Below, in pieces: positions 30,101 through 64,000 of a stretch of 64,000 bases of DNA. The position numbers and the translations under genes are program-made. Origin of the DNA: Ascidiella aspersa (Eukaryota); contig OZ004609.1 of the NCBI GenBank assembly GCA_963924565.1, positions 7,626,001 through 7,690,000 of the forward strand, read 5' to 3'. Numbering within the stretch: position 1 is the first letter of the stretch; each line of letters opens with the position of its first letter. The notes under the pieces were generated by a model. That model worked only from the letters and a program-made list of their open reading frames with translations, was not told the origin of the DNA and searched no databases.

Positions 30101-33100
30101 ATGCAGACGTTTATAGTTTTTTGTAAAGGATTTAGCCAAGAAACGTTTGAAACGAATGTTTATGTGTCGCGATGTTTGAATGTTTATGTGTGTTTTAGTA
30201 ACAAAACTGCATATTCAACACTTTCCTGTACACAGTTTGTCTAAGGCAGTTGTTACAATATCATTTAATTATAACATAACAATCTGCGTAACGTTTGACT
30301 GTCTTTTAAGTCACTGAGTTGAGAATCACTTCATTGGACTGTTCAATACTTTAGCAATAAAAAACCAAACGTGTAATTTCAAATAAATTACTAAATACCT
30401 TGAAATGTATGTAAAACTTAAAAATGGCTCTGGCTATACACAGCAAGGCAATCGGTAAAAAACCTTAAAATCGTTGTTTAAATATTAGTGTGAAGGCTTG
30501 CGTGCTTGCCGGCATATTTTTCATACGAATATTTTTTTTTCCAAACTCACAAATATTGCACTGCAAACTTAAAAATCTCTATAATTTTCCGCGGCACACA
30601 GTTTGAGAATCCCTGGCTTGAGGTTACATTTTTTGCGTACAGGCCTGACTTACCGAGGAGACGCCAATCAGACGTACAACAGAAGCTTCTGGAAGTGGAA
30701 TGACGACACCGTGACGTCATATCAGCCATGGGAGCCGGGAAACGAAGGGCCAACTGACACTCGGGGAGCAACACCCTGTGCGCTTGTCAGTGATTTCCAG
30801 TTCAAAAGTCGAAGCTGTGGTAGTTTGAGAGATCGGGCAGCAGCTTGCTACATTGAATCTGCACCTGCGCGAAGAGCCAACAACATTACTAGTAAACTTG
30901 TAACATTAATTGATATACGTTAAAATATAAATCATTATTAATTATACTCTTTAAAGATTAATAAATTGAGTTTAAAGTAACTTTTCACCAAACATCTGAC
31001 TTAGTGTTATCACATTAAAATCCTATTTTAGTGCATCCGGTTTAAGATCCTTATTTCTAGTTATTCCAATTCGAAATTCAGAACCTTGTGTTTGCAGCTT
31101 TAAACACTGACTTTTCAGCGATTTTAAGATCAAAACGTAGTTTTTGATTCTCAATCAAAATTGTAAGCCTAGTGTTTGCAGATCAAAACCCTGATTCGAT
31201 TGTGGAAAGAATTTGGAAAGCACAGGAAAGTTTGAGGAACAATGGTGTGAGTGCTAGCAAGTTGCTATCATTGGAAAGAAACCTCTCAAAGGTGATTGCC
31301 GAAAGTGGCAATATTTCGATTCACGAAACCATCGGAAAAGTCGTGGTCTATATCAACAGTTTTAATGCAACCGGGGATCGAGTCAAAACCAATTTAATTC
31401 GGCTTACCAATGTCACGTCCTTCAATTCAACGTTTGAGACTAAACACGGCTCTAATATGGAATTGGTGGCATTTGAGGTGAGTGTTTACAACCTTTCATC
31501 CAGCTTTCACAACGTTTCTTCAAGCAGTCTCAAGGGCCCGACAACTCATTTCGTGAGCCTTTCTCCGATGGTCTTTACCGGGGTTTCGAGCTACGACGCC
31601 GCAGGAGGCTCCGCACTAATTGGTTCCATCTCTCTTTCGAGGATCGTTGCACAAGACAAGGAAAGCGACCAGAGGATGTGTGAGAAAGTATGGAGTGAAG
31701 TCCCCAACAATTCCTCGACAGGATTAACAATAGATACGCTTCAACTCACATGTGTTTTCATCGACCAGTCATCTGGAACCTATTCCACTGCTGGTTGTCG
31801 CACTAGAGAGGACGGGGGGCAGGTCTTATGTGAATGTGATCACCACACAGTGTTTGCTGTTCTCCTCTCTGTAAACATGGTTTCTGTGACACAGGAGGTT
31901 AAGGTAAAGCATAATTATTGTTTGTTCAGATATTTTAACAACATGTAAAATTTTACCACTAACTAATCCGTTCCAGATCTTTTCTTACATTTGCGAATCT
32001 ATTTCGATTCTGTTCCTCACCGCCACCATCGTACTCCTGCGCATTCACAAACGCGCGATCAGCAGCGACCGTACTCTCATTCAGCTTAACGTCGCCATCG
32101 CCCTAACTTTGTTGCATTTAGCCAACCTAACTCATGATGCCGCTGCAAACGACAACACCATGTGTCTCATTCTAACGGCTGCCATTCAGTACTTCCTTCT
32201 TGCTACAGGTAATTTGAAAGCTAAAAACAAACCTACCTGCTTGCTTTATCAACAGCGTTCGACAAATGCTGTGTAGGTTATTTTAAGCAATTGTTTTAAG
32301 TAACTGGTATTTTTAAATAAATTTATCTATAAGAACAGCCAAACAATTTTTTAGCCATATATACCCTAATTAATGATAAAATAAAATACTTTTTTCGACA
32401 AGTTGACGTTGTTAAAGATCTTTTTGTAATCTTTAAAAGCCAACTTTAAACATTCACATAATATGCACAAACGAACAAAATTGTATTTAAGGTTTTTGGT
32501 TCATGTTCGATGGAATACGGATGGCGATGGCCTTGGCTTTTCCAATTCGTTTCCACACCAAAGACCCCGAGACGAGATCAAGAGTGTTCTTTGTGCTGGG
32601 ATGGTTCGTTCCAGCCGTGATAGTTGGCTCGGCGCTTTCCGTCGGTCTGCTGTATTCGGCAAACTACATGAAGCCCAGCACACACTACGAAAAATGTCAC
32701 CAATTTCAACAGGTATCCACTCATTGAAACAAGTGTTGATTTTTCACGTTTAAAATATCAAAACAGCAGGCCATATGGTCAATATAGATTTAAAGCAATT
32801 GTTTTTGCTAATGCATTGGGATATATAACCCAGTTGAGAGCATGGAAACAAGCTTGACTTTTCGGTTAGGTTTTTAAAAGGCTTAAGTAGTGTCCCTTTA
32901 TGTTTTTTAGAATATCCGCAAGTACGACAGATGCTGGTTGGCTCCCGGTACATTGGTGTACATTTTCTCGGTGACTGTCCCGCTCGGGATTGTTCTGGTG
33001 GTGAACTTCTTTGCATCTCTCATCGCAGCTTATGCAGCGCTCCCATTCAGGGGAAGGGAGGAGCGGAGACAAGGAGAAGAGATGGAAAATGCAAAGAAGT

Positions 33101-34254: not shown

Positions 34255-35385
34255 AAAGGTTTAAATTAAAAAGTTAACCTTAACCCAACCGTTTTAAAAT
34301 GTTTTTCTTAAAACGAAAACAACGCTTTACAAAATTCTAAAGTAATTTGTAAAAAGTAAAAACAATATAAGCTGAAATAAGTGTAGAAAAGTCGCATATT
34401 ACAGTTTGCTAAACCTCATCAAACCAGTAGTTTCCATAAATACTATAAAATATTATGCTACTATACTTTATTGCAAACATTCTTGGCAAATAATAAACAA
34501 TTTGTTACGAGTGGTAGATGCATTTTATTAAAAAGGATGCAATATATAAGTAAATTCTTCTTGGAAATAGTCTTAAAATAAGATATAAAAATGGCGTATT
34601 AATGCTGTCAAGATAAAATATAGTCATTTTGTGTTGAATATATTTATTTGTTTGCAGTAAACATGTTTTGGGGTCTAATATGGCATTCGTTCTGTGTACT
34701 TAAATTTCACATATCTATTATTTTAATTTATTGACTTTATTGTGTTATGTAATTATTTTTACCCTATTGATATTTTTTCGCTGCGTTTTTTCTCTAATTT
34801 GGTAACTATATTTCATTTCAACAACACTTTTCAACTACTTTACACGTTAAAAAAAATCTCATTCATTTCGATAACTTTAACATTTGATATGGGAAATTGC
34901 CCGACTTTAATGAGAAGCAACTTATTGCTTCGTCATTGTTTCAATTCCGCTTCGTAATGTGTTTTAAATTCCTCGAAAAATCATTTAGTGAATAAACAGC
35001 ATCTTGTACAATTTTTCAATTAAAACTTCCGTTGTATTTTAACCTATCGCCCGATTTCACTAGAGGTAGCAAGGTGAGCCACGTTTCTCTTCCTGTCCCT
35101 TTAAGACCACATGCCGGCGACCGACCGGCGAACACATTTAGACGGGCAAACTTTGTTTAATCTATGTTGCACATTTCCTATATTAAAAGGCTGTAAAAGC
35201 GTAACGTTATTCATGCTGCAAGACTTCAATCAATGCTATCTCGCCACTTTTCACCCATAACTGTTTTTAAATTCTCGAAATTCAAAACATGAACACAAAT
35301 AGACGTATAACGTTGGATAAAGAGAAGAATGCGGCTCGTGGGCTACATCTGTAAACACTTTAAAAACAAGTCGACGACCAAGAGG

Positions 35386-35598
35386 TTAAATGATCACGCA
35401 GTCGGGCTGGTTCTTTTGGTTTTCTTCCTTTACGTTTTCAAACAGATTATCAAGTTGAGCGGTGCATCTTCCTTGGAATCTTTCCGGCGACGAATCGCAA
35501 TCTCGAAGTCTCGCTACGTATTCATTCGTGAGGGTCTTGAGCACTTCGCGATGTACCCCTTGCAAAATGTCTGGATCCACGTACTTGTTGTTGCAAAC
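35386..35598 (-). CDS. Alternative terminal exon 18b of the atlastin-like GTPase, ending in a CaaX box (CVII)
   Basis: Phase-0 acceptor tttaag| followed by VCNNKYVDPDILQGVH...RFQGRCTAQLDNLFENVKEENQKNQPDCVII*. It is clearly paralogous to exon 18a ([16 protein letters not shown]...[24 protein letters not shown]). Splicing 37803 to 35598 gives an ~872-aa isoform. Confidence 0.75.
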   Translation of the reverse strand, partial: VCNNKYVDPDILQGVHREVLKTLTNEYVARLRDCDSSPERFQGRCTAQLDNLFENVKEENQKNQPDCVII

Positions 35599-36397
35599 CT
35601 TAAAGGATCAAACAGACAGCATTTCGTGAAGTGAATAGGCTAGTGGGTAGTTCTGGACTGATAATAGTTGTTTTATTAGTTGCGTTCGCAATAGTTGTTT
35701 GCAACTTTCGACAAAACGTCGCGAATAAAAAAATATTTTCGCTAAAAATTAAGTACGTTGTAAAAGTGAAACACTTATCTCGGTTTAACAGATAAACACA
35801 TATCTCAACAAGTCAAGCCAAGAATCACGCAGTAAGTCAAGTAACTAGGCTCGAGGTGCATTTCTAACTAAATCGGTTAAAATGCAGTTAATGCAAATTG
35901 TTATTCTACGATCTAAATCAATTTGTTTGTCCAACGCACTTCAGCCAACCTTTGCGTGTGACTTATTTCAGTAATTTTCCTGTGCGATTAAGGCAAAACT
36001 TTCTTAATAACTAAACTGTCATTTTCTATAAAATAAGGATTTAGTATGTTCCAGTCTCCTATAGAAGAAAACCTAATTCAACACGGACCAAAATTATTAT
36101 TTATGGAGTGTTCTGGTTGCTAAAAATAAATTGTTCTAAATCAATGACAAACAGCGAAATATCTCCGTCTGTCGTTTTTTATTATTTTTGTTAACAACAT
36201 CCACTTCTGTCGACGCAACAAGCGTAAAGCGTTATGCAAATATACAGGAGTTATTAATACATAGGTCATAGACAAAAGAAATAAAAAAGTACTCAATATA
36301 TGGTTTCAGACTACAGCAAAGCCATTATCAAATTAAAGCTAACACACTACAACTTTTGAATACATAAGGACACATTCCAATACACAAAGCTCTTCAA

Positions 36398-39300
36398 TTA
36401 GTCAAATAAGCTCACAACAGCATTGACACCAGTTTCAATACCAGATTTAATCGGTTTCACTACATATTTCTCGAAAGGTTGTGCAACATATTGATCCACG
36501 GTACTTGAAATGCGATACCAAAGGGTTCTGTTTTCCTCGTTTAGTTTCTTCACAGACTTGTACTCTTTGTTCAGCTCCGATTTGCATCTCTCCAAGAATG
36601 GTTCAAGAAGCTCCCTACTCTCCGATGCTGATTCGATTTGCCGTCTTCCGCGCGACTGAAGTCCATCATGTACATTTTGGAGGACTTCCTCCTCTACGTA
36701 ACGTCCATTGCATTGCTGTAGTTAAAGTTTAAACAAAATTTTAGGAGAAAAAATAATTCCTGTGTAATTTATTTACCTTACTATAAACAAGTCCGACATT
36801 AATCACTTTTGTAATAAGCGTTTACCTATTTTAATTATTTTTACTGTGTTCAAGGTTGGCTGTATTTTGCACTTACGTTCGAAAGAAATGGATTCTCCAT
36901 TCAGAACAGAAAATCATACATAACTATATGCTCTTGTGTTTAATACTGTTGTCTTTCCCTGATTGTACAAATTTTCACTTATTTTTGAACTAGTTTTCTT
37001 AAAGATTGCAGTTTTTTTAGATATCTCGATTCAGAATTGAGCGATGTGTTTATTTATATGTAACTAAATAGGTGAATATAAAGAACTTTAGATATAGGAT
37101 TGCAATGCAACTCACTGCTCCAACCACATAACTATGGGAAATACTCAACTATATGGTGGGCCAAAACTCGGCTTACAGTTATTAAACTTTTGTTAGGTAC
37201 CATTGAATGGCTACCACGCGGATAAAAACCCCAAACCAATAAATTTACTTTTAGACCCAAACCCTACTTTTTATAAGTGTAAGCCTACATTTGGGCCACT
37301 CTGTATACGCTATCTCGCGTTTTAAAGTATGCCCTCTTATCCATCTAGCATTTGGAAGGTCAAATTCGACAAGTTTAAGTATAGTTAAGTCCGACACCGA
37401 CTCCGCTGCTCTAATTGTGCTGAGGTTTTCAACACGTTAAGCACGACACATGCTACGAATAACCCCAACTGGCGCCTAGAGTTCGGGCATGAATTCAGCC
37501 ACCAGTAGACCACTTAACAGGGTTGCATACATCATTAATATACACAAACTATAACACTGCTTTAATATTTCTTACGCGCTTTGTATAAAATAGATTGAAA
37601 GTAGGTATATTCTATGCGTGATCTCCAGGAAACATTATCAGATATAAATCAATCAAAGCAATTTATAGGCTTTATACGGCCAGACGATTAGCTGCCAACG
37701 TATTAATTAAATTTTACTAAAAGATCTCTTGTAATAAGAATTATACACCGGACAATAAAACAAGTATCACTTGGCTAATATAACTTTAACAGATTGGCTT
37801 ACTTTTTCCATGGTCTTCATGTATTCCGCTTTTATGTCTTGCAACTCTCGTTCTGCATTTTCCTCACACGTTGCCTGCAATACAAGAAGATCTATTAAAT
37901 AAACAAACACGAGACGAGTGAAAACAATACTACTTTGAGGTATAAAAATCTGTGGACCTTATATAGCTAGTTCTAGGAGGGACTATTTAGCAAACGTTTT
38001 AACATTACGGCTAACTCCCAATAACTTGCAATTGGCATTCAACGATAAATAATTTTTATTATAATTAGGTAGTAACTTTTCTCATTGCTTTCCCATTATA
38101 AGGTTGAAATCTTTCCCTAATTTGAATTTTGGCGTATAAAATACCGCAGTGATTTGATTTACATTTTGAGGCAACGGTTTAAGGTCTGGCAAGCAAATTA
38201 AGAATTACAAAAGGCAGTTGAAGGTAAAAATGCTATATTTAACAAATTTGGACGCGAAAATAAATAACAAAAAACAACGATTGCCAAACTAAATAAACCT
38301 GTAAAAACACCAGGTTCAAACTCAATAGGTTGGGATAGAAGAACTTAATAAAGATTTTTATTGCTAAAAATCCTAAAAACGCCCAAACTTAAAGCAGTGG
38401 TTCCAAACGCCAAGAACACCAGCAACAGCAAGAGCATAAAATAACCATCCACAGTTCCAGCCCAAGGAATTTTACTCATTATTTTTTAGCTACCTTGTTT
38501 TGTTCGTTTCGCTCTTTGACTGAAACAAAATGCCCTTCAACGTCAGTCTCCAGCTTTCGACGAAACTCGTCAAAATATTTTTCAGGTTGCTTTTTGTCGA
38601 CGCGATCGTAATCGTGTAAAGCGTCGCTCTTCAGTAGCTGGTGTCTCTTGACCAACTTGGATTCTTCATGGTAAGTTTGGGAACTCTAAAATGTATTAAA
38701 ATTGTAAATCTTGGCGTAAATGTATTTCAACCTGCTCGCATGACAAACCGTAGCAGTTTTGACAGCTTCCAATAACCGAAAAGAGAATTTACATATTGCT
38801 TGATGAATTTAAAACCGATTCCGTAAATTTCACATCAATTGCACATTCTAAAACGGGATCTTAATCTGATTTTAATTTGTGACGCGGAACCTTTTGTAAA
38901 TTAATAAAAAATCATGTGTTTTCCTTTTACAATTGCATATGCAAGCAAGTGCGACTTGCATACTATCCATTAAAGAACTGGTAAAATTATGGTACTCATA
39001 TATTGCTTTGATGTCTAGGGAGTGTGACTGTCAACCTATTAATGAAAAGAGTGTGAAAAATGCGTTTTTTTTAATGGAACATCAGCAGAAAAATTACCAC
39101 TTAATTCTATCGACAGTAATTTCACCTCCTCGATTCGCCGTTGATAATGAAGGTAGGCTTCACGTTTTGCTTTTTCGAAGTCATTCCGAGCCCTTTCCTA
39201 GAAGATGAAAATGTAATCAGATATTTAAAATAAATTTAATGCATTTTCGTGCAAAGCGTTCAAGCAAAATTTGTTCTTTACTATGGGAAAATTGGCATTA

Positions 39301-42300
39301 AAATTGCTCGCTGATGGTCGTATTCATCAATCGGACCAGACTCAACAAATAGCAACGGTCCAGCTATTAATAAAACAATTTTTAAAACTAATCAACCAAA
39401 TGAAAATTAGCAGTTAAAATAACATAACAATGAGCGTCAATAAACGAATATACAAAATCTGAATATAAAAATCTCGTGGTAATTTTATTCACTACCAAAA
39501 ATATAAATACATATTTAGAAGACGCTTAATTCATCACTGTCCTTGTACAACAAATCAAAAGAAAAACTATTTATTTATGACACAATATTTCTTTCCATAC
39601 CCACCCCACGAGTGTCGTTCCGTCGTTTTATCTTGTCGAACTCGTTGTCGAGAAATTCGTCGAGCTGAGAGCGACATTGCTGTGCGAAATCTTTGCCTCT
39701 GTCCTCTTCTACAGACGCGATGATTGCTCGCGCTTTGCTCTTGCTCTCGGCATGTGCGTGCTTGAGTGTGGATTCTTCTGTGTAGCCAATACTGCAAACC
39801 TGGGTAAGAGGACAAGAGCGTGCTGTGTGGTTTATATTGACGTGGTTTATGCTGAGATGCTGTATCGGTGGAGGGTATAGGACATCAGCACAAATAAAAA
39901 GACACATAGGACCTGAGAAACAACACAGGCCGGCTGAACATGGCTTATCAAGTGATTTAGCAAGACCTGCAGCTCATGTTCCATAAAACGCATTTAATTT
40001 AGATTATTTGATCAAAAAAATTACACAAGGCATTCAAACCTATTTTTAGTTTTTCACCTTGTCAAATGAGATCATTTATACCTTTCTTTTGAAAGGAACG
40101 ACACTTTATGTGCATGTCAGATACCCTCTTTTCTTTCTGCTATAAACACATTTAATTACTCATGGGCTCAAATATAAAAATTGCCTGCTCCTGCTGCAGA
40201 AAGTAGCAATGATAACCTTTGAACACCATTTATTGGTAGTCCTGTTTGTAGAAATTTCTAAATGTATGGATATGCATTACCTGAAGGAATGGTTCTCAGC
40301 GATTAAAAGTGTACTTAAAAGAGTTTCAGTAATTATTTTGTCCGTAATAGTTAGCTAATACCTCATCTTTACTAAAAGTGCAAAGAAATCCGTTAGAAGA
40401 ATGGTACGGCATAAAAACAAAATTTTGCCTATACAAATCTAAATCTAAAACATGTTAAACGGCATAACATTTTGCTTTAGCCTTTAAATTGACAATACGT
40501 GGCGCTAGACTTAATGGACGCAGAAATTTAACACGTTTAATTTATATTTAAAAAAAAACTATAATATTAAATGTACAAAACACTTGGAAATTACTTACCT
40601 CATCCATCAAAGATGTATAGAGAGCCTTTGCTTGATTCATGATCTCAATGGTCTTGGATTCCGCTAGTTTCTGGAAAATATACGGTTTCTTTACCACGTC
40701 GTATGATTTCTTTGTACAGATTAATTTCTATCAAAAATTAACCGTCAAAAGTAGGCACAGTAGACAAAGAGTGCTTGTACGCTGTAAGAAGATAATAAGA
40801 TTGTGCTTGAAAACAATTTTTTATATTTTAATTAGAATTTATAATCCCTTATTTAGTTGGAGATTTTCGTAAATAAGATATACGAAAAAATAGGCCTAAG
40901 TCACTGAGATGTAGAGTTACTTTATAAATGATAAAATAAAAACGTTGAGTGATTGCAGGGTAGTTGTTCACTGGGATACGTTATACAAAAACAAACTTAG
41001 GATTTAATATCGCTATATGTAAATGTTGTGAGGGGTTAACATTTTTTTTAATTTTCTGCTTGGGGTTAATAGGGGTAATGGTAGGAGTTAGAAATTTAGT
41101 TGGGGTTAGTGTTTTAGGGGTGAGATTCGGGTTAGATAAAATGTATTGGCCTGATTCTTACCATTCAGGTCTTATTCCTAAGGATTGATTTATACGGTAA
41201 TTCGACTATTACGTATTAGTCCTATTTTGATCTTATTCCGAACTGTGTTTTATTCGAATGTTAATGTTGTTCTTATTTAGGTCTTATTGTTGGAGTCATG
41301 ACGAATATGCGGTGCAACAAATATCACTTGCTTTATTGATGTCGTTGGTTTGCTTCATCTTTCGTCTTTCCTCTGCGATCTTCTTCAGGAGGCGTTCTTT
41401 CTCTTCCGTCCGCTGAGGGGTTCCTCTTCCGACAGGTGAAGTTTTGAATATGTTTAGTGCGCTCTTCTGTGAAGAGTCGTGTGCCGCTTTGAAGTCGCTA
41501 TCCTCCAGGAAAACGTCGCTGCATTTCTGGGATAAACACATTGGTAACACGTCTATTTTCTATATGTTCAATGGGAAGAGGGTTAAAGGCAAAGAATGCC
41601 GTGCATTAATATATAAAAACCAAACATAGCAGTAATGTAAGAAAACAAAATCCAAAAACACGATACGTAACATTGGCGTTTTTTCCCTCAGCCTTGCATC
41701 AGGGAGTCGAACCTTTTGACTTTTTCGGTTCGGGTTCAAGGATTTTTTTGGAATCCGGTTCAGTTCCGGTTCAGCTCCGGTTCAAAGTTGTGACGTCATA
41801 CAGGAGCGAACCGCTCTAATTTACAGGTTCGGGTTCGGTACTTCCAAATTATTCGGTTCAGTTCCGGTTCGGTTCCTTAAAATCTTATAAAAACCGGTTC
41901 ATAAAGTTCCGTTACGGTTCGGAATAAGTTGACCCAAAACCGGTTCATAAAGTTCCGGTTCGGTTCCGGTTCGACTCCCTGCCTTGCATAGAGTATACAT
42001 AGGGCTATCTTTACGGATACGTGACATTTTATTCGGTTACCGACATCCGATATTTTGGTCAAAAAGGATCGCGATCCTATCCAAACCAATGACGTCATTC
42101 CTATGCTCGAACAACCATACTGGTTTAAATTGCAACGTTCCATGGTAACTTTGTCCAATTTATAAGGTCATATTTGGACTTAAAATTAACAAGTTCAGTT
42201 CGTTTAACCCACTATTTTTTTAATAAATGTACATTTTAAAGTAGAAATCGCTAAGATATATCGTAAATCGTTAACGAAATTCCTATAATAGTTTGGTGTC

Positions 42301-45300
42301 TGGTAAACTCAATGAAATCCCGTTCCAGAAGGGTGCGAACAAACGCAGCTTCCCTTAACAGCAGCTTATTCTAACTTTGCACGTTTTTAAAGCTTTGTAA
42401 CTTTTATTCGACAAAACAAGCACAAGTAAACCAGCAATAACTCACCTGTTCCATTCCCTTAATGTAAGCATCGATTGACTTCAGCGTTTCGCTTTCCAAC
42501 CGACGTCGCATTTCCTCCTGTACAAACATAACATAAGTAGTTCTGAACAAACTTCGTTATTGATGTTCTCTAGGGAGCGTATGTAGGAAACGGAAGACTT
42601 TTATGGTCACCAGGAGAGGGGCCTAACAAAGGATGTTACTCATAATTTTAGATAACATTTAGTACACTGATTAAAATAAAAACACTAATGGCAGTGTACC
42701 AAGTTTTCTTCAAATTTGTAAAGACAAACTTTACCCCTTCGTTACTTTGATTCGAGTTTTAGCATTCGGAAAATGTGCTGGATTTTATGGATAGATCTAC
42801 GAACTCAAAGACTGTGGTTTTAAATAAACAGTAGATGAAGCCGTTTTAAATAAAAAGGTAAAACGAGAGAACCTTTACAGACTATAGTGGAAACAAAAAT
42901 TGGCGTCATCTAAAAAGACGAAACTAGCTGCAGTTCAAACGGAATTCCCCGTTTACGTAGCTGGCTTTGCCTCTACAGTAAAACCGTTTCACAAGAAGCT
43001 TTTAGTGACGTCAAGTTCAAAACTAATGCCTCGACCATGGGGATTTCCACGTTGCGAAATATATGTCTTTAAATCTCCTTTTTCAAGGCAATGCTTTGAA
43101 ATGTGTGAATTTTATACGAAAAACGAAAAGCGACACGTTACTTTAAAACATCACGTTGCTGTCAAAATAAAAAAAACGCGCAAACTATTCCCGATGTTAT
43201 ATTTTATATACGCATTATCAAGCTTTTAAAAGCATTTCAGAATTTTTTCCAATGCCGCTACCACTCCAATTTTTTAATTTCAAATTTGAATAAAAAAACA
43301 TTACGAAGCAGTCACGGGCAAACAACAAAGCTATATACGTAAACGTTCCAATGCAATGTGACTAGAAATCGCTTGAATAGTTAACCCCCGCGAAAACAAC
43401 AACGAAGGGAATTCCCCTTTAAGTAGGCCACTCTTTGGCTCTTCACTAAGTAAACTCACTTCACATTGCAGAAAGCTTTGAGTTACGTCAATGGCGAAAC
43501 TAATTGACCTAGCACGCGTTTTTCCTATTGCGAATGGCACGGATTTTCTGGTTATTTTTCAAAAAAAAATAATTCCTCGAAATCTGTGACGAAATTTTAT
43601 ACGACATGTTTAAATTATTAAGTTGCTCGTAAAACTTTGAAATGTCACCTTTCTGGTTAAACAAAAAATGCTTGAAATATCCCGTATGTTATATTTTATA
43701 TAGGCATTATCAAACTTTTTAACGCAGTTCCGAAACATTTTTTTCCAATGCCGCTACCACACCAATTTTTAAATTACAAATTTGAAAAACATTGCGAAAA
43801 CATGGGCAAACAACAAATTCAGTCAAACATGGGCAAACAACAAATTTAAAGGCAAACGTTCGATTTCTCTGTGACTATAGAAATCGCTTGTTATCCATAA
43901 CTGCCGAAGCAACAATGTATCGCACGCGACAAAGAGGACAGACATTGCTTAGCAGATCGTAGATCAGGTCGTTTCAACGCTATTACAAGGCATGTCGGAA
44001 AGCCGCTGAAGTACCTGTCTGTGTTTGCTTAAACGAAACCCGTTACCCGACGCTGGTGATTCCCCATCTGAAAGCGCGTGAACTCCTGCCTCATAAGTTC
44101 GACCAGCTTGTTTCTGTATTGCTCCGTAAACTCCTGCGGGCAATCTTTGGTGTTTTGCTCGTACAAGTCGAATGCTTCTTGCCGGCTCTTGTCGTTCGCT
44201 TTGAGCAAACTCTCGTTGTTCAAGACCTCGCCTTTAGCAACCTAGCAGCGCCCGAATTGACAAATTTATTGAGGTTTACGCTACTGAGCACAACATAAAA
44301 GTGGTGAATGTTTGACAATTAGCAATGTTTTAAAATGGCAATCAGCACTAACTTACAATCTGCAAATAACTTTGCCATGACAGTGTGGCGATGTAAACGT
44401 ATTCTTACATCTCGCTGTATAACAAGTGTACTTTGCCTATATGCAAGTATGAAAACATATTTCGTATATGTGGCTTACATTTTGAAGGCTGGATGAATAT
44501 TTCTCTTCGGCCTGCGCAACAAAATCGCGAACGCGGTTCTTCAAACGTTCCTGAAAGAAAATATAAATTTATGAAAGGGGTCAACAAACCTTTCTCATAG
44601 AGGGTCAAATAACTTGACTGACTGGCGCCAAATAAAACAAATTGGAGATCACGGGCCGCTTGTAAATCTTTACATTTACCTTAGACGTATAGTTATTATC
44701 AAAGAAGAAAAGATAAAAAAATATTAAAATGTGTACACTTATGAAGTTGTTGTTTAGTTTAAAGTTTAATTTAAATTTAGCTTAATTTTGCATCGATACT
44801 CATTTCCGGATTATTTGGAAAATATGACGCGGGCCAGAAGATAAAGCAGCGCACCTGGTTTATGCGAATAGTCATAAATGTCCAGCGACACCAGCTGTTT
44901 TTATATGTTATGTCAAATTTAATTGATTTTTGTTTTGCTAGAGTGAAATCGTCACAACCGACAAATGAATTAGAATACAGCTTCGCATAACGGTATAGTA
45001 TAAACTCCATTTCGGAACTCCATTTAGTCAGTTGGCTAAATCAGAAAAGCAAATGATTGCGAATTACCATCTGTGCGATGTTAGTTTGCTCGTGGGTGGC
45101 AAACTCCTGCTTGATCATTTCGACTAACTTCTTTCTGTATTCGGCAATGAACGAGTCATTACCAAGTTTGGGAACAACGTCAAACTGCTGCAAAGCAATT
45201 GCCTGACCGGTTTCGTGTTTTTCCCGGAGAACTTTCAACTGCACAAAGCCGAACTCGTCGAAAAGCTGAAGCGACAAAAAATATCACTTGTTTAAACCAC

Positions 45301-48300
45301 ATTAAACATGGACACAAAAATGCATTTTAGTACTTTAACTTTGTAAAATAATTGCTAGTTTTACAGACCTTAGTCATTTGGTTGGAGTAAGCTTCCTTGC
45401 ATTGCTGAAGGATGGGTATCATTGCTGCCTTTGCACTTGCCTATACAAACAGAGAATAGTTGGTACTATACCCTGCTAAAAACTGTTATAGCTGTATAAT
45501 GCAATGTTGAAATCCGAATAGTTGGATTATCTTAGTTATAAAGGGAATGGAAACTATTAACTTCTGTTCACATTAATTAATTAATTCAGTATCATATGCG
45601 GAATACTAAGTGAATAAATTACGGTACTTCCGATTCGCCAACAAAAGTCGCAAAACACCTGGTTCAATTTGCTTTTGACGCTTGTAGCGCTCAAATTAGG
45701 AAAATTCGAGGCTTTGTAGCGTCTGTGTTAAAACACGTTTTAGAAATTTTACGGTTCAAGCGAACTGTGTTAGAACTGGATAAAAGTAAACAGCGAATGC
45801 GCAGACTAATCAAGCTTCGGTATGAAAGATGATAGCCAGGAACCGCATTATTCACCAAACATGTATGGTAAATACATTTACTAAAACGAGAAATAAAGCC
45901 ATTCTCAAAGTAGTTTTACTTATGTTGAATTAACAATGCTTTAGCAACAATAAAAGTCTAACCTGCTATTAACGGGGTTAAATTATAAACATTTATAATG
46001 TACAAAACTGTAAGAGAACAAATCCGTAGTCTGCATCGCTTGGCAACGTTTCGTTATGGATGATTAGTCTGCCCATTCGCTGTTCACCTGACTTGAGCGC
46101 TACAAGCGTTGAAAACAGTCAAAATAGATTATTTAGGCTAGACAAACCAACTATTGAAGCTGGACAAAATGTGACTGAAGTCCAAACTTTATTTAGAACA
46201 ATGTTATTATAGGCACGAGTTAACCTAAGTATAAGAAAAACCTAGCCAAAATATTTATGCGACTATATTCTCGAGAATGATTAGCAAAAAAACCTGCAAA
46301 ATTGTCCCGACGTCTGGCATTTTCCCACTTCGAAACACCTCGAAGTAAGCCAGCATAAAGTTGATGAGAGCTTGCCCTGTTACGATGTTGCCGTTAACCC
46401 TCTTGATGACGACATTGTGAGGCGAAAACAAATGCTGAACGAGCTCTTCCAAATGGTCGAGAAAGTCCAATTCCACTTCTGCATAATAAATAATATTATT
46501 AAACGCTTAAAAAAGTATATGACGTTGTGTCTTTAAAAAATCACTGTTCGACACAGGAATTCTAAATCGGGATATTTGACAGAAATTGTATGATATGTTG
46601 AAATGCTCGATATCAGTTTATCGACAACAATTCGATTGCTCCAGACTTAGTTTCAACTTTTCTTAGCCGATATACCGCTGACTTTGGGGCGATTTACCAA
46701 TGGAGGCCATTTTTAACTTGCAGATTACCTGCCAGACAAATAGAGCTTCCCTGTTTCTGTCCTCTGACAGCCACCTTCCTTCCAGGATGAGGCATCAGAA
46801 AGCAGGACACGTCGTCGTAAGAATCCTTCACGTTTTTTCGGACGGACTCCAAGTCTTTGTGCTTCGTCTTTACGGCCAATAAATCTTCCAAGACCTGTCG
46901 ACCGCCTCCTATACCAAGCTCGAAATCAGGGTCCTGCCAATCTCGCACCAGAAACAGCAGATTCTAAAATGTTTCGCACTCTATATTTAGGATGTATAAC
47001 GTCGTAAACTCTAAGCGTTGCTTGTTTAGGTCGCAAAATACACAATGTGGACACCATAGGTAAATGTGAATAGCATTTGATCTATTGCAACAGTCGGAAG
47101 GGTAAAATTTGTGTGTCGAAATATTAGAATTCGGGCATTTTTAACAACTGTCTCTAATATATGGTAAACTTTGAAAGCTCTAGAAACGGTCAACTATAGC
47201 GAAAAATTATTTAATAACCTACCTGAAAAGGTTTTCCGTTCAGCCTGCTAGATTTGTGGGCCGCTTTGCCGTAGTCCGTGAACAACTGGCAAATAATTGC
47301 GAAATAGTTTCAGACTAAAATATTTCAATTGTGTTAATTTCATTTATTCCTATACTTGCAAATGCTGGAGGGCGTCTTCCTGTATCTGCTGCATGACATT
47401 GTAGATTTGCACGGAACTTATCATCGTGCTTAAAGCAAATATGACGGAACAGCCTTTGACCGAAGTAGAACTGTCAAAGGCTCCCTGCGTGTCCATCAGA
47501 AACACGGCGACCTGTAATAAGGATTGTTTGGTAAGTCAGGTTGAAAAATGTTGAGAGGCAGATTACATATAGCGGCTCGATTGTCTGTAGTCCATTTATT
47601 GACTAAAATGCGATTTGCGTTACATTGTATCCTAATAAACTATATATGCATTATGTAGAAACTGTTTCTTCCAAACTCACGACCAAAACTGGTGAAATTT
47701 TGTATAGGTTCTCCTCTCTGTTAACAGTTTTGCCCAGTTTTAAGTTACTTTGATTGATAAAAAATCCATTCAGCCCTAGAATGTTGTTGTTTCATACAAG
47801 ACGCAATACAGCACTGAACAGTCAGTAGCGCAAAGAAAGCACTATAGCCAAAATTTTAGGATTCTCTTTAAATCGTTATTCGGCAAATATGAGGTTTCCA
47901 ATCAATTGCATTATGATCGAAATTATATTGCTGAAAATGCTCGTTATGTTTCTATTATGGATATATGCAGGACTCATATGCTAAAATATTACCTCTCCAG
48001 CTGGTGTATTGACAAAGAACGGTTCGTTCCACAGCCAGACTCCTTGCGTATGCCTGTCCTTGCCGCCTCTCCAACCGAAACCTTCACGAAGCTGCTCGTC
48101 TTTGTTGGCAAGCCACGACTTAGACTAAAATACAATTTAAAACTGAATATGGTCGAGTTTAATCCTGATAAGGAAAGAAGCCAATTTATTCAGCAAATCC
48201 GCAACTGAAAGCAAATGTGAAAAAAACACTATTGTAAATACACGCATCGTTCTTTGCCAGTAAAACCTATTTTTTGTGATGTTAACAGCAGATTGGATTA

Positions 48301-49133
48301 TTGATTGTTGAGGCCTTGATTACTTCATGCTAATTCATCGTCAAATAGTAAACACACTACTACACGGTACCGTAAAATCTATTACTGGGTGTATACGGAA
48401 AGGAACGCCTTGTTTACTCCTTGCTAATAAACCGCCGAATAGTGAACACACTACTGCAAAGAACTAAAATCCCACATAAATTGGTGTATATAGCAATTCC
48501 CAAACTGTGTGCCGCGGCACACTAGTGTGCCTCGAGAGATTGCCAAGTGTGCCACGAAACTTTTTTGTAATTTCGGAAAATAGAATATTTGTATTACCGA
48601 TAGACATACACGCAAGCATTTTAGACTTAAATACGCCATACCCCTAAAAAATTTATTGTATTGCAACATACATATATTTTGTTGTGTGTTAAGGGCGATT
48701 GTAAAGTTACTCTGTTGTTATTCTGTTAAAAGTGTTCCGCAAAATATTTCAGATAATTTTAGTGTGCAGCGAACCAAAAAAGTGTTTGGGAACCACTGGT
48801 GATACGAAAAGGTACGATCACGGTAAAAATGCTTGGTTTTTATCCGAACTTGAACTTGCAAATGAACCATCCGTAATCATGATCAATCCCCGGAAGCCAA
48901 CTTACCTTTCCTTGCTTCTGCGACCACAAGTAGCGAAGAAACAAGTTGAGCATGAAGGATTTCCCTTTGCGGAACGCACCAGCCAACGAATACACGGCAA
49001 CCGGAACGTCAGCGACCTGACCGAACACCCGCTCAAGTTCCACTGAGTCGATTTCGAACGAACCCGAGTCATTTGGTCGAACAATCTGGACGGCCTTGTA
49101 AGTTCCAATGTCCTTGCGTTCTGCGTAAAGCAT
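36398..49133 (-). CDS. Atlastin-like (GB1/RHD3 family) large GTPase with six tandem three-helix-bundle repeats and no TM hairpin (~907 aa)
   Basis: Exons 49133-48906, 48124-47993, 47511-47356, 47285-47223, 46963-46729, 46478-46294, 45440-45369, 45265-45068, 44550-44479, 44241-44047, 42517-42446, 41526-41332, 40670-40599, 39799-39605, 39197-39126, 38685-38494, 37874-37803 and 36715-36398 are phase-consistent and stop-free, with one GC donor at 41331. G1 GAFRKGKS, G2 [12 protein letters not shown]3 DTQG, G4 VRDW and FLMPHPG are atlastin signatures. Confidence 0.9.
41700..41981. mobile_element. hAT-type MITE in GTPase intron 11
   Basis: 14-bp TIR CAGGGAGTCGAACC / GGTTCGACTCCCTG, perfect 8-bp TSD CCTTGCAT, and internal (CGGTTC)-type repeats. 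Confidence 0.9.
43175..43890. repeat. Diverged ~200-bp direct duplication in GTPase intron 10
   Basis: ...tgttatattttatata.gcattatcaa...ttccaatgccgctaccac.ccaattttt...gggcaaacaacaaa occurs at ~43190 and ~43685. Confidence 0.7.
48491..48798. mobile_element. hAT-type MITE in GTPase intron 1
   Basis: TTCCCAAACTGTGTGCCGCGGCACACTAGTGTGCC at the left and TTTGGGAACCACTG at the right. Related ends occur at ~30590-30615 and ~54882. Confidence 0.7.
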
Positions 49134-50655: not shown

Positions 50656-51754
50656 TCTTGAACAACTAACTAGACTTTGCCTAAAGCAAACGAAAAAAGC
50701 CGCAAAGTCGCGTTCGACTTCTAAGCGCTAAACACCGAGGATTCCCCGCAGGAGTTTGTGGAGCAATAAAGAAACAAGCTCGTCGAACTCATGAGGCAGG
50801 AGTTCAAGCGGTTTCAGACGGGGAATCACCACAGACGGGAAACTGGTTTGGTGGTACATAGAAAATACAAAACAAAGACAACTATTGCTCTCTGTCTGGC
50901 GATACGTTGCCGCTGTTATAAATTACAAGCAATTTGTAGATTCCGTTAAATCCAAAGTTAGCGCCTTTTTGCTTACACAAGTATGTTAACCTGCTCTACA
51001 CATCAGTTTTTTTGTTCAATCAGAATGCAAACTTCTAAATTGTCGGGAAAGCGGCTTTAGGTAACCCATACTGCTTGAAAAGTTTATAAATGCGTAATAT
51101 AATAGGTTCGAGTGTTTTTTATGCAGATTTTGTTTTATCCCTTTGTTTACTTTCGAAATAACGTGTCGTGTTGTGTGTACAATTCTGCCAAAAAATTCAG
51201 ATGTCCGATTAGCATGAATATAAAGTTCGTACCATTCGGAATTTGGGAAGTTGGGTTTTAACCTTAACTTAGCTTACATCGGTCTGAAATGAGTCTGCCG
51301 TTTAAAACGGCGAAGTCGCTTACATATTGGGGATTTCCCTTCGAGCTGCTAGAAGTTTCCACTCTTTCCCTGAGTCGATAACTGTGCCTTGTGAATTATT
51401 TTGTTTAAATAATCTCCCCCTATGTTTATTTTGGACAACAACAGAAACATTGGCTAAATCAAAATAAAACGATTTTCAGAATGCTAAAAATCAAATGCAA
51501 TTTAGGTTTAGGTATTGCTTTCCTTTGCCTATGCGAACAAAACTTAGTACAATGCAATTTAATGTTTGTGGTTTAGGCGTTTATAAGCTTCCCAGGTCTT
51601 AGCCTGTTGGCTGTAAAGTGTTTTGTGTCTTTACAAGCCCTCGCGAGATTCAAAAAAATTGGCTTGATGTTATGTTCGTACCGAAGGAAATGTGACGTCG
51701 GTTGAAAAGCGAAACGCTGACGTCAATCAATGCTCAAGTGACGAAAATGAACAG
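50656..51754 (+). pseudogene. Inverted, decayed copy of GTPase exon 10 - intron - exon 11
   Basis: ~50656-50839 matches exon 10 (..[30 protein letters not shown], with stops and a lost donor). ~51684-51754 matches exon 11 (..EM*RRLKSETLTSINA..EQ|gt, acceptor mutated). The intervening sequence has patchy similarity to intron 10. Confidence 0.85.
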
Positions 51755-54024
51755 GTAACAGTTGCATTGCGTGTGATTCTGCTGTTCAGCCATAACCAAA
51801 TCCTGTCAAAAACGTGGATCGGAGACGTCACGCCTTTGCTATACAGATAGAAGCTTTCAATTTACTACAGAATTTTTTTATCTAAATTTACTCAATAAAT
51901 TTGAGAAACTGACAAAGATATAATCTCTGAAATACATATTAATTTATGTTTTCAGGAATAATTGAGTTTGTTGAATGTGTGTTGACCAAATTGGCACCTT
52001 TCAGGGATGTTTTTGATTGAAAAATTGAGGGTACTTTCCGATTTGCTCGTGCTTTGCTGTGAACAAATATCACATCCTTTTCTCTGTTATACCATCGTCT
52101 ATCAAAAGTTACTTAGAAAGTACGATTATTATATGACAGAATGTTTGTGCGGTTATTTACGCCGACAAGACGGGAATTTGTTAACATTCCTTGCCAATAG
52201 ATTAGGCAGAATGAATTTCTGTCTAGCGGAAATCGTATGCGCCCTCAGGCGAAAAGTAAGTTAGTTTTACTTTATCCTCGCACGTTTATTCAAAATTTAT
52301 TTTTTACGTTGCCAGGATTTAGTGCCTTTATAACATATGGTTTGTTACATGGCATATATTTTACCTATTACAAGCTTCAAAAAGAATATTTGCATTCCCT
52401 GCTTGAATATATAAGCTTGCAAACATGTCTCGTACTATTTTCACCAAACCCAGAACCAGGCTTGTTTTTATTATAGTTTTTTAATTTATCTTGGTAACAT
52501 TTTTTCTAAACTTTAGTTTGAGGCGATAGTGCGCTTGCAAAGCATATTTTAGCATATTAAACAACTAAAAACAACGGCTTACGAAATAGAAGCAGAATAT
52601 TGTTTGACCTATTTAACAACATTATTTGTCAGTCCCACAATAAAAATAGGTAAAGTTTATTCCTAAATTGGATTTAGAAATATGTTATACTAATTAAAAT
52701 AACCATCAATATGTTTTCATCAAAGTTAATTAGTTTTCCTCATTCGTACACTTTCTTGCCTGGCGAAATCTAGGATATTTTTTTTGTATTGAATACGTCC
52801 AAAGTATATATGCTGCACTAGCGAAAACTGATATATATAGGCATAAAATGCAAAAACACTGCCAACATTGATAAATGTAAAATTTGTTCGAACGAAATTT
52901 GTTTTAAGTTTGCCAAATTAAAAACAAAATAAACGTTAAACATCACCAGTAGACCAAGCAAAACCAAACTCAAGTCTATAACTTTGTTTATGATTTTGAC
53001 TTTAGCAAATCAGTTTTGTTCATTATGGTGTAGGACTCTAGGGCATATTAAATAATATATTGCCGAAAACTAAGTGTACTGTTAACTTGTCTTGTTTATT
53101 TCATACAAAAGGTCGCCGAGTAGAGGGAAGCGAAGAGACTATAGAGAAAGTGGGTCTGGCCTTGACGAGAGACAGGGCCGTTTCTCTCGAAGAGACTAGG
53201 ACAAATATATAATTATGCAATTTCACGTAAAGAAGGCGCGCTTGAAATATAACAAGAAGGTGATCGACATAAACATAGCTACAAAGTCACTACATGGCAT
53301 CATTGTATTTTTGTTAAATTTAACAGTCCAATCTCTACAAAATAAATGCAACATAAAATGATTTTAATATTACGAAAAATTCCTATTGTTGTTAGTAAAT
53401 ACATAAATCACGTCAGCTGTCCTATATAGTAGGCTAGTATTAGCACTGCGGTTCTGCTCTCTCGCGTATTAATTGTTGTATTTTTATGCATATTTAACTA
53501 CTTTTCAACTTCAAAATTTTGAAATTAAAAAACCTTATGCAACACCAAAAAAAGTTCAACGAATTTAAATTTACTTTGTGGCATGGCCTAGTAATCTCAA
53601 GCAATCGCAATTTTCACTTATTTTACTGATTTTAGTCTTTGTTGTGGTAAGAATAACATTGATATTAGGCAGAAAGTCACAAACAACCAATACGTACACA
53701 TCTACAAATTTATTTTTATGTTAACTCACGATTCTATTGTTTAAAAAAAAAATATGTTTATTTTTCCCCATTTAGCCATCGTCTTATTGAGTACCAATAT
53801 AACTCAAAACAATCATTAAAATTTATTAAGTCAGATGGCATTTTTAGACCCATTGTTGAAAGCAAATAAGCTTTTAAAGAACACCACATTATGTTCTGTA
53901 AACAAGCTTTTAAAAAAAAACTATCTCGTAATGGAACATTGCCCCAAAATATGATTTCCAAAAAATCACCCATGGCAAATAACCACTTACACAATTTTAA
54001 ACAATCTCAACTCTAGGTCTAGTA

Positions 54025-56202: not shown

Positions 56203-56243
56203 ACCCTGACGAAGGCGGCTTGTATAGGTTGCCGAAACGTTGG
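56203..56243 (+). ncRNA. Minimal type I hammerhead ribozyme (Penelope pLTR type), copy 1
   Basis: ACC-CTGACGA-A-GGCGGCTT(GTAT)AGGTTGCC-GAAAC-GTT-GGT: canonical core, 8-bp stem II with G-U pairs, palindromic AACGTT stem III and stem I ACC/GGT. Confidence 0.7.
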
Positions 56244-59970: not shown

Positions 59971-60011
59971 ACCCTGACGAAGGCGGCTTGTATAGGTTGC
60001 CGAAACGTTGG
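59971..60011 (+). ncRNA. Minimal type I hammerhead ribozyme, copy 2
   Basis: Identical to 56203-56243, shifted by one repeat unit (+3768). Confidence 0.7.
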
Positions 60012-63985: not shown

Positions 63986-64000
63986 TGCATATTTCAAAAC

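Follow-up and report, generated by a model that had tools for sequence, protein, structure and literature searches.

An atlastin-type GTPase with a predicted six-bundle stalk and no transmembrane hairpin from the ascidian Ascidiella aspersa

Canonical atlastins, such as human ATL1-3 and the Drosophila protein, carry one three-helix bundle (3HB) and a hairpin of two transmembrane (TM) segments. They end in an amphipathic helix that perturbs the bilayer, and they carry out GTP-dependent homotypic fusion of ER membranes. RNF112/ZNF179 has an atlastin-like G domain with a helical domain, and also a RING finger and TM segments. Guanylate-binding proteins (GBPs) belong to the same PF02263 family and are encoded by clustered multigene families. 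They have no TM segment and a helical stalk that starts with two 3HBs, and GBP1, GBP2 and GBP5 end in a CaaX box. Immune signals induce GBPs, which coat the membranes of pathogens. Candida Sey1p has a stalk of four 3HBs linked by continuous helices, and this long stalk is required for fusion (PMC4576867). The Bombyx mori protein BmAtlastin-n (770 aa) has no TM segment, contains a long helical "coiled-coil" middle domain, is cytoplasmic and is antiviral (PMC4926086). It is the one functionally studied TM-less atlastin that we found in the literature searched. A review raises the question of whether atlastins assumed the functions of GBPs in those invertebrates that lack them (PMC9005921). Our literature search for atlastin-like expansions in innate immunity, or for tunicate GBPs, returned nothing relevant.

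We analysed a window of 64,000 nucleotides of the A. aspersa genome (contig OZ004609.1, positions 7,626,001 to 7,690,000). A first-pass annotation, made from the letters of this window, had proposed an 18-exon gene on the minus strand at 49133-36398. The analysis confirmed its coordinates and strand: the frame opens with a Met at 49133 and closes with a stop at 36400-36398, on the minus strand. Of the 17 introns, 16 are GT-AG and the remaining one is GC-AG. The 905-aa product consists of a G domain (~1-331, exons 1-6), six bundles (~332-865, encoded by the remaining 12 exons as six pairs of 72 bp and ~195 bp) and a tail of 40 aa with no TM segment. The stop of the last exon is followed, after 215 nt, by a polyA-type hexamer. 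The features are given below by their position in the window, with P0059 standing for the Clavelina lepadiformis protein XP_076818141.1, named "guanylate-binding protein 7-like" by NCBI.

48906..49133, minus strand: exon G1, begins with the start Met and holds the P-loop (GAFRKGKS); PF02263 E 9e-8; GT donor, phase 0
47993..48118, minus strand: exon G2, switch-1 region (GFGWRGG...T.G); 46% identity to P0059 147-187; AG/GT, phase 0
47356..47511, minus strand: exon G3, DTQG (G3 motif); PF02263 E 2e-20; PDB atlastins 2e-18 versus GBPs 0.05 or worse
47223..47285, minus strand: exon G4, collinear tblastn match of P0059 and canonical atlastin; AG/GT
46729..46963, minus strand: exon G5, with FLMPHPG and the G4 motif RD; phase-1 donor; PF02263 E 2e-9; Atlastin-1 E 1e-14
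46294..46478, minus strand: exon G6, last part of the G domain, then linker; 47.5% identity to P0059 340-399; phase-1 acceptor fits the G5 donor
45369..45440, minus strand: exon M1a, 72 bp, helix 1; 54.5% identity to P0059 400-421; in the module alignment
45068..45265, minus strand: exon M1b, 198 bp, helices 2-3; leave-one-out E 6e-6; best PDB match Atlastin-3 358-406; in the tree with the canonical atlastin 3HB
44479..44550, minus strand: exon M2a, 72 bp, phase 0, AG/GT; in the module alignment
44047..44241, minus strand: exon M2b, leave-one-out E 3e-3; clusters with Clavelina module 2 (86/80)
42446..42517, minus strand: exon M3a, 72 bp, phase 0; in the module alignment
41332..41526, minus strand: exon M3b, GC donor supported by RNA (8 reads); clusters with Clavelina module 3 (98/97)
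40599..40670, minus strand: exon M4a, RNA junction to M4b (10 reads)
39605..39799, minus strand: exon M4b, RNA junction; leave-one-out E 5e-14; clusters with Clavelina module 4 (98/95)
39126..39197, minus strand: exon M5a, RNA junction to M5b (6 reads)
38494..38685, minus strand: exon M5b, RNA junction; mean depth of 6.1 (200-base bin); clusters with Clavelina module 5 (89/83)
37803..37874, minus strand: exon M6a, 55% identity to P0059 852-871; 100% conserved in the duplicate copy; zero RNA reads in the sample
36398..36715, minus strand: exon M6b with the 40-aa tail and stop, terminal exon type 1; aligns to P0059 873-971 including the tail; RNA over 36100-36499; Kyte-Doolittle maximum of the tail 0.85
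35386..35598, minus strand: duplicated b-type exon, candidate alternative terminal exon type 2; ends in CVII-stop (CaaX box); tblastn versus M6b E 4.5e-5; AG acceptor
50668..51755, plus strand: inverted orphan paralogue pieces outside the gene, M2b-like (50668-50853) and M3a-like (51669-51755); tblastn 69% and 59% identity

Sequence searches were run exon by exon. Exons G1, G3 and G5 matched PF02263 above the cut-off, and all four G motifs are present in the translated exons: the P-loop with its arginine, DTQG, and RD, with FLMPHPG, which canonical atlastins share, after G4. The proposed atlastin-signature G domain is thus upheld, and the PDB searches place atlastins ahead of GBPs by 13-16 orders of magnitude. 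Exon G5 matched no GBP at ≤1e-3. Exon G3 matched atlastins at 2e-18 to 5e-15 and GBPs at 0.05-0.3, and RNF112 fell well behind the atlastins at 2e-5. The fold comparisons, computed on a model of the Clavelina orthologue P0059, gave the same first rank. Foldseek returned ATL1 at E 1e-30, RNF112 at 3e-19 and GBP at 1e-17 or worse, and VIA-align gave Z 35 for ATL, 23-26 for GBP, 25 for RNF112 and 19.3 for Sey1p (the last over model residues 81-756 with a large rmsd of 24.5 A). GBPs differ from the ascidian protein in their GBP-type motifs, their GBP_C domain and their back-folding GED. The GBP_C profile (PF02841) had zero matches in 10 exon ORFs (E up to 1) or in P0059 (1e-3), and the Clavelina model contains a repeat rod instead of a back-folding GED helix. 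Both sequence and model support an atlastin derivative, not a GBP.

Canonical atlastins differ in having one bundle, whereas this gene encodes six. All six module exon pairs (72 bp plus 192-198 bp) are in phase 0. In a leave-one-out HMM search of 2347 six-frame segments of the window, every second (b) exon was recovered by the profile of the others, at E 5e-14 to 3e-3. The first (a) exons, searched alone, gave a non-significant E of 0.03-52 because 24 aa are too short; their assignment draws on size, phase, position and an invariant Tyr only. Run against the PDB, the b-exon profile matched the 3HB of Drosophila atlastin (residues 356-413, E 2e-8), of ATL3 (3e-8) and of ATL1 (1e-4). These searches and the module alignments bear out the six homologous modules of the first-pass annotation, whose consensus pattern agrees with the consensus of both alignments. 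In the module tree, module 1 joins the canonical atlastin 3HB (81/77), and modules 2-5 cluster by position across species with the values listed above, so the repeat is old. Sequence comparison identifies module 1 as the ancestral atlastin 3HB, and modules 2-6 as products of internal duplication of the 72-bp plus 195-bp phase-0 pair, pre-dating the split from Clavelina. Compared with a paralogue, the ten stalk exons from M1a to M5b have dN/dS ratios of 0.09-0.49, a range that marks purifying selection on the stalk modules.

The AlphaFold model of the Clavelina orthologue, not of the A. aspersa protein, was built from a 10-row alignment with two rows informative for the stalk; single-exon rows were dropped because MAFFT piled the repeats onto one another. 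It has a pTM of 0.39 and a stalk pLDDT of 70-88, and it contains six 3HBs in which 56-aa helices alternate with ~20-aa helices running on between the bundles. The predicted six stacked 3HBs after the G domain were thus found, in a model of the Clavelina orthologue. From this model we infer that the six bundles form one rod, which would be roughly 25 nm long if straight, as estimated from helix lengths. Sey1p/RHD3 proteins resemble this design in their multi-3HB stalk with continuous inter-bundle helices. The likeness is one of design only, as the G domain is nearer to atlastin. The four Sey1p bundles are not recognizable as sequence repeats and are followed by two TM segments, and Sey1p fuses ER, whereas the six ascidian bundles are homologous in sequence and no TM segment follows. 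Within a single branch of the dynamin superfamily, the ascidian protein would extend a series of 3HB numbers (one in atlastin, two at the start of the GBP1 stalk, four in Sey1p, six here). Because its bundles remain recognizable sequence repeats from a symmetric exon pair, it illustrates how a stalk can lengthen step by step.

Transcription was assessed in an RNA-seq sample of ~6% of one run, which gave 89 reads over a 6-kb stretch without G-domain exons. Spliced reads span the junctions M3b-M4a, M4a-M4b and M5a-M5b, and the GC donor of M3b is confirmed because eight reads with a loose end at 40670 continue into M3b sequence. Read strand agrees with a minus-strand RNA, and reads extend into the 3'UTR beyond M6b. 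The junctions M4b-M5a, M5b-M6a and M6a-M6b were absent among the 89 reads (~6% of one run), and M6a had a depth of zero. The 18-exon model is therefore corroborated at three stalk junctions; neither the M5-M6 junctions nor the junction of G domain and stalk, which lies outside the 6-kb stretch, were seen. The reads do not discriminate between this gene and a near-identical copy 93 kb away (C3:7748-7768 kb), whose protein is 92-100% identical. Since every module exon begins and ends in phase 0, the pairs could behave as cassettes, such that the main product has fewer modules or stops at the end of module 5, the 905-aa form being rare. The zero depth of M6a against 6.1 for M5b fits this idea, as do runs of b-type exons elsewhere in the genome that vary from 1 to >10 exons. 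We nevertheless consider it improbable: three Clavelina paralogues have the full set of six modules in their NCBI models, positional conservation extends to each module, and reads reach the 3' end of M6b and the 3'UTR. The near-identical copy and the orphan exon pieces nearby, which have no G domain upstream on the plus strand, could also suggest a decaying or mis-assembled duplicate without function. We give this explanation almost no credence, as it is already largely refuted by a frame open over 905 codons, correct splice sites including the confirmed GC-AG intron, spliced RNA, and dN/dS <0.5. At the level of sequence, the gene proves to be intact and transcribed, and it encodes 905 aa with complete atlastin-type catalytic G-domain motifs.

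The ascidian protein further differs from canonical atlastins in the absence of a hairpin and of a recognizable atlastin C-terminal helix. The maximum Kyte-Doolittle 19-residue mean over the stalk and tail exons is 0.85, compared with 2.34 in the canonical atlastin of the same genome, and a search of the 64-kb window found no likeness to the atlastin TM or C-terminal region. Hydrophobic ORFs at 38201-38485 were considered as a TM exon and rejected. They are intronic after the M5b donor, with a depth of 0.07 versus 6.1 next door, and they belong to 106 chance segments of the AT-rich window that are just as hydrophobic. A search downstream for further modules or TM exons found the CaaX exon (35598-35386) alone. 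The CVII ending of this candidate alternative exon resembles the CaaX box of GBP1/2/5. The exon is intact in 4/5 copies of the C3 cluster, with a nucleotide identity of 94-99% versus 61-95% in its flanks. It had zero reads in the RNA sample (~6% of one run), and no CaaX isoform was seen among the four predicted Clavelina and Ciona proteins. The 40-aa tail after module 6 is conserved with Clavelina and disordered in the Clavelina orthologue model. Considered as an atlastin-type amphipathic helix, it has a hydrophobic moment (muH 0.59) that does not stand out from those of the stalk helices (0.49-0.66). The first-pass annotation had described the protein as soluble and without an anchor. The missing hairpin stands, but the description is too strong because of the conserved tail and the conserved candidate CaaX last exon; the protein is probably attached peripherally to membranes.

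Relatives were found in two other ascidians, at 25-71% identity exon by exon. Three Clavelina paralogues, P0059, P0067 (LOC143462270) and P0196 (LOC143463183), are named "guanylate-binding protein 7-like" or uncharacterized. They share with the A. aspersa protein a collinear layout in which the G domain is followed by six modules and a C-terminus lacking TM segments. A relative in the laboratory model Ciona intestinalis (LOC100183836, P0203) has at least four modules and no TM segment. P0059 and P0067 have ~80 additional N-terminal residues, which form three short helices in the P0059 model; a search of the window for an exon like this extension found none. We found no experimental study of these predicted proteins in the literature searched. 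The idea of an undescribed family holds in part: a TM-less antiviral atlastin (PMC4926086), tandem 3HB stalks (PMC4576867) and the Clavelina and Ciona orthologue predictions are already known. The first-pass annotation had also suggested a lineage-specific family. A tree of the G5 exon (77 columns, without BmAtlastin-n) agrees: the ascidian long forms make up their own clade (97/99), apart from canonical atlastins including the ascidian ones, on a long branch (0.77).

Across the genome, matches to atlastin-type G-domain exons number at least 46, and those to module exons at least 72. They are clustered, and the clusters include near-identical duplicates and orphan exon pieces. In the C6 27-Mb cluster, the single exon checked is of atlastin type. 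An exon-by-exon search of the genome for GBP_C (PF02841), run without a positive control, gave zero matches. By these sequence data, the gene is a member of a tandem cluster that is shaped by birth-and-death evolution and falls in an ascidian-specific clade distinct from canonical atlastin. The canonical, TM-anchored atlastin of the same genome (L017:2093-3679) is a single-copy, intronless ORF, whereas the long-form gene is multi-exon and multi-copy. The G-domain exons of the two are 37-69% identical, exon by exon, and the long form keeps all dimer and catalytic motifs. It might therefore be a regulator of canonical atlastin, its TM-less G domain and 3HB heterodimerizing with ER atlastin to damp or tune fusion. 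The soluble cytosolic fragment of atlastin has such an effect on fusion in vitro. This explanation appears still less probable to us than the cassette one, because the separate clade on its long branch speaks against it and because it leaves the six conserved bundles, the membrane-directed C-termini and the dozens of paralogues unexplained.

The best overall explanation, to which we assign a probability of about 0.5, is a six-bundle, anchorless atlastin that tethers or coats membranes without fusing them, in a GBP-like cell-autonomous defence. On binding GTP, the G domains would pair head to head in the manner of atlastin, Sey1p and GBP, with the first bundle acting as a lever, and the rod would keep a long distance between the G domain and the C-terminus. 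Peripheral attachment of the C-terminus to a membrane would come from the tail isoform or, by use of the alternative last exon, from a prenylated CaaX isoform. Membranes would thereby be tethered or coated in a GTP-driven manner but not fused. Should the rod, dimerization driven by GTP and an anchor that switches between lipid and tail all prove real, they would make the protein a natural molecular ruler that tethers membranes without fusing them. The weakest step is the biological role, for which cell-autonomous defence, as in GBPs and BmAtlastin-n, seems most likely over ER network fusion. An ascidian-specific family may thus perform the job of vertebrate GBPs, and it offers a concrete case for the question posed in the review (PMC9005921) among the invertebrates most closely related to vertebrates. 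Several observations point to an immune role: the large clustered family, its near-identical duplicates and orphan pieces, the lack of a GBP_C match in the exon-by-exon search, the atlastin type of the one C6 exon checked, the antiviral activity of BmAtlastin-n (PMC4926086) and the question raised in the review. Selection on the stalk is purifying and not diversifying, which points away from it.

The old, positionally conserved six-module layout and its purifying selection are unlike those of an arms-race protein. They would suit a constitutive long-range tether or spacer with a housekeeping function and no defence role, acting on ER or organelle membranes ~25 nm apart or with canonical atlastin. 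Low-level transcription in an ordinary RNA sample and the dependence of Sey1p fusion on its long 3HB stalk (PMC4576867) are compatible with such a tether. On the other hand, the genome already has a canonical atlastin, and the large copy number, the birth-and-death clusters, the lack of a TM segment and the candidate CaaX resembling that of GBP1/2/5 fit it poorly. We hold it to be unlikely, if the most serious competitor to GBP-like defence. To our knowledge, ascidians have no interferon. More tentatively, and with our doubts outweighing our confidence, the defence reading can be extended: ascidians may have rebuilt GBP-like defence from atlastin. A large, tandemly expanding set of TM-less GTPases would then polymerize on pathogen-containing membranes, or tether them, in a GTP-dependent manner, with plug-in 3HB pairs that set the reach (other numbers in paralogues) and duplicated last exons that switch the anchor.

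The ascidian protein and the BmAtlastin-n type have in common an atlastin-clade G domain, an extended helical middle, the absence of TM segments and a similar size. BmAtlastin-n is an insect protein, and the likeness of its middle domain to the ascidian stalk rests on the published description (PMC4926086). In the G5-exon tree, from a short alignment of 77 columns, insect multi-module proteins group with Apis atlastin (92/90), which suggests that the long atlastins of insects and ascidians may have arisen independently.

The gene was modelled from stop-free segments and a reading of the splice sites as 18 exons on the minus strand, running from a Met codon at 49133 to a stop at 36398. Its coding sequence is 2718 nt long (905 codons), and 16 of its 17 introns are GT-AG, the other being GC-AG. 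The head is encoded by the following exons:

49133-46294, minus strand: G-domain exons G1-G6, carrying [14 protein letters not shown] and FLMPHPG

Three of these six exons match Pfam PF02263. We compared G3 and G5 with solved structures. Exon G5 matched Atlastin-1 at 1e-14 and no guanylate-binding protein (GBP) at or below 1e-3; for exon G3 the E-values were 2e-18 to 5e-15 with atlastins, 2e-5 with RNF112 and 0.05-0.3 with GBPs. The first-pass annotation had claimed an atlastin-type head, and these matches bear it out: at the level of sequence, the G-domain exons are far closer to atlastins than to GBPs.

Downstream of G6 there are six exon pairs (M1a/M1b to M6a/M6b), each composed of an "a" exon of 72 bp and a "b" exon of 192-198 bp, all in phase 0. 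Identity of the b exons to the first b exon is just 11-22%. Despite this low identity, every b exon was found by a profile built from the other b exons in a search of the window's complete set of 2347 six-frame segments (E 5e-14 to 3e-3). The joint b-exon profile matches helices 2 and 3 of the middle domain in Drosophila atlastin (residues 356-413, E 2e-8), ATL3 (356-412) and ATL1 (380-438). Judged from these profiles, the b exons are clearly homologous, and the proposed six modules of the atlastin three-helix bundle (3HB) type stand. The a exons cannot be assessed statistically at their short length; they have the same size and phase and an invariant Tyr in common.

The product had also been described as lacking an anchor. 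None of the stalk and tail exons reaches typical transmembrane (TM) hydropathy: their maximum 19-residue Kyte-Doolittle mean is 0.85, compared with up to 2.34 in the canonical atlastin of the same genome. That protein is encoded on another contig by a single 529-aa ORF without introns, and it combines one 3HB with a TM hairpin and a tail. Its nearest relatives are the canonical atlastins of Phallusia (71%), Clavelina (68%) and Ciona (66%), which shows that the genome belongs to an ascidian. No resemblance to the atlastin TM or C-terminal region was found anywhere in the window. Hydrophobic ORFs at 38201-38485 were considered as a TM exon and ruled out, being intronic and without RNA reads. Module 6 is followed by a 40-aa tail that can be aligned to that of the Clavelina orthologue, and the last exon has a duplicate, here called the CaaX exon:

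35598-35386, minus strand: duplicate of the last exon ~800 bp downstream, with a proper acceptor and ending ...CVII-stop

Of the five copies in the cluster, four have an intact CaaX exon. Its nucleotide identity among copies, 94-99%, is well above the 61-95% of the flanks; the exon is conserved and is a candidate alternative end. We found no in-phase donor after the module in M6b, so M6b and the CaaX exon can only be alternative ends after M6a. The absence of a TM segment by hydropathy holds, and the conserved tail and the candidate CaaX-ending exon qualify the broader statement that there is no anchor.

We examined the transcription of the gene in one stranded RNA-seq run with the same species label, using ~6% of the run and the 6 kb at 35300-41299, a region without the G-domain exons (89 reads). 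Spliced reads support the M4a-M4b (n = 10) and M5a-M5b (n = 6) junctions of the 18-exon model. A loose read end translating to ...[10 protein letters not shown] (n = 8) confirms the M3b-M4a junction together with its GC donor. The M4b-M5a, M5b-M6a and M6a-M6b junctions were not seen among the 89 reads, and no read fell on M6a or the CaaX exon. In all spliced reads the first mate lies on the plus strand, as expected for minus-strand RNA in most stranded libraries. Reads over 36100-36499 agree with a polyA hexamer 215 nt beyond the M6b stop. Two of eight reads carry a variant (38617 T>C) that is the allele of a near-identical gene copy, so the reads stem from the gene, its copy, or both.

The b-exon profile retrieved just 58 matches at E ≤0.001 from 1.84 billion representative proteins. 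The closest full-length relatives are a Clavelina lepadiformis "guanylate-binding protein 7-like" (983 aa), two "uncharacterized" Clavelina paralogues and Ciona intestinalis LOC100183836 (917 aa). Each of the three from Clavelina is collinear with the gene and carries six modules; at least four modules are recognisable in the Ciona protein, and none of these relatives has a TM segment. The Clavelina GBP7-like protein (P0059, XP_076818141.1) also has an N-terminal extension (residues 1-79), absent from the gene. It is modelled as three short helices at a pLDDT of about 70-78, looks UBA-like and has no match in Pfam.

Fold was assessed on a predicted model of the Clavelina orthologue, not of the protein encoded in the window (mean pLDDT 71, stalk 70-88, pTM 0.39). 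After the G domain, helices of ~21 residues alternate with helices of ~56 residues [quoted passage not shown], and the last 50 residues are disordered. From the helix lengths we estimate that the rod would be ~25 nm long. Foldseek matched ATL1 at E 1e-30 over the G domain and first bundle, and VIA-align gave Z-scores of 35 for ATL, 26 for GBP2, 25 for RNF112 and 19 for Sey1p, the last alignment running to model residue 756. The Sey1p stalk has four bundles of the same topology, whereas the modelled orthologue has six modules; the GBP1 stalk starts with two bundles (PMC4576867).

In a tree of b-exon modules, sequences group by position and not by species (M3 98/97, M4 98/95, M5 89/83, M2 86/80), which implies that the six-fold repeat predates the divergence of these ascidians. 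Module 1 groups with the canonical atlastin bundle (81/77) and is thus the original bundle. In the tree built from the G5-exon region, all long forms of ascidians fall into a single clade (97/99) that is distinct from canonical atlastins and has expanded separately in each species. Multi-module atlastins of insects (Bactrocera, Planococcus) group with insect atlastin there; on this short alignment, the grouping suggests independent origins in insects and ascidians. One of them, the Bactrocera oleae "atlastin" (P0061/P0004), combines four 3HB modules with one TM segment at the C-terminus (KD 2.22); this tail-anchored multi-bundle form seems to have evolved separately from the ascidian family. 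Ciona intestinalis LOC100181965 (P0022/P0195) and Ciona savignyi H2ZF54 (P0015) are gene models of 384-424 aa that contain three stalk modules but lack a G domain. Either the proteins consist of the stalk alone or the models are incomplete; the two LOC100181965 entries also carry a hydrophobic Gly/Ala-rich segment (KD 2.12).

The initial observation is confirmed and its interpretation supported in part: the reading as an atlastin derivative with six 3HBs is retained. TM-less atlastin paralogues and multi-3HB stalks are kinds already known, and the suggested undescribed family is represented in databases by predicted proteins, which are uncharacterised there.

Genome-wide, we detected at least 46 matches to exon G5 and at least 72 to the b-exon profile, mostly in clusters on three contigs. 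A copy of all 18 exons lies ~93 kb away (contig C3:7748001-7768000), with 92-100% protein identity. In this copy, the final four exons (partial M5b, M6a, M6b and the CaaX exon) have gone through one more tandem duplication. A third paralogue, again with six modules, is on the opposite strand within 100 kb of the gene (60-100% identical by exon), and orphan exon pieces occur within the same distance. Two of these are inverted, lie head to head with the 5' end of the gene, and are debris of cluster rearrangement:

50668-50853, plus strand: orphan M2b copy, 69% identical
51669-51755, plus strand: orphan M3a copy, 59% identical

Runs of b-type exons elsewhere in the genome suggest paralogues with 1 to >10 modules. 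The largest other cluster, at C6:27.02-27.39 Mb, adds ~20 G-domain exons of the atlastin type. They share 38-46% identity with G5, and the stalk-module profile has no matches in this cluster. One of these exons was checked against the PDB and matched atlastins at E 1e-10 and no GBPs. This cluster is, by sequence comparison, a second, distinct atlastin expansion.

With the architecture of the gene product shown, we infer its mechanism from the family. The G domains would dimerise head to head in a GTP-dependent manner, the first bundle would work as a lever, and the far end would attach peripherally to a membrane via the tail or a prenyl group, resulting in membrane tethering or coating without fusion. 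The case for a defence role is indirect. It draws on the high copy number and birth-and-death clustering of the genes, on the CaaX option, and on a weak genome search for GBP_C that found nothing. It also draws on the TM-less BmAtlastin-n of silkworm, which is antiviral (PMC4926086), and on the open question of atlastins taking over GBP functions in invertebrates (PMC9005921). Between the gene and the third paralogue, dN/dS is 0.09-0.49 for the ten stalk exons M1a-M5b, and purifying selection on the gene calls for caution about the defence reading; the protein may instead be a housekeeping tether. It is also possible that it regulates the canonical atlastin. For the question of how dynamin-family immunity and membrane tethers evolved, the gene is of good interest.

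Several other features were recorded in the window. A tandem repeat with a period of ~3768 bp occupies 54300-64000 and reaches the window end. In the stretches that were compared, at least three of its copies show 100% identity. Apart from one ORF of 99 aa, the array contains none of ≥90 aa; it represents either a macrosatellite or a tandem duplication of recent date. A 79-bp satellite at 12067-13223 (~14.7 copies, 87% matches) accounts for a local GC-skew spike of 0.41. Transposon-derived ORFs lie on the minus strand at 6946-20015, and exons of an adhesion-type GPCR are found ~3 kb downstream of the CaaX exon on the opposite strand:

~7778-9076 and 17927-19627, minus strand: two copies of a P-element/THAP9-like transposase, with TNP-like RNase H and GTP-binding insertion domains
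9329-10837, minus strand: hAT-like ORF with Spin-doc zinc finger and DUF4371
31148-32273, plus strand: adhesion-type GPCR exons with GPS motif (PF01825) and 7tm_2 (PF00002)
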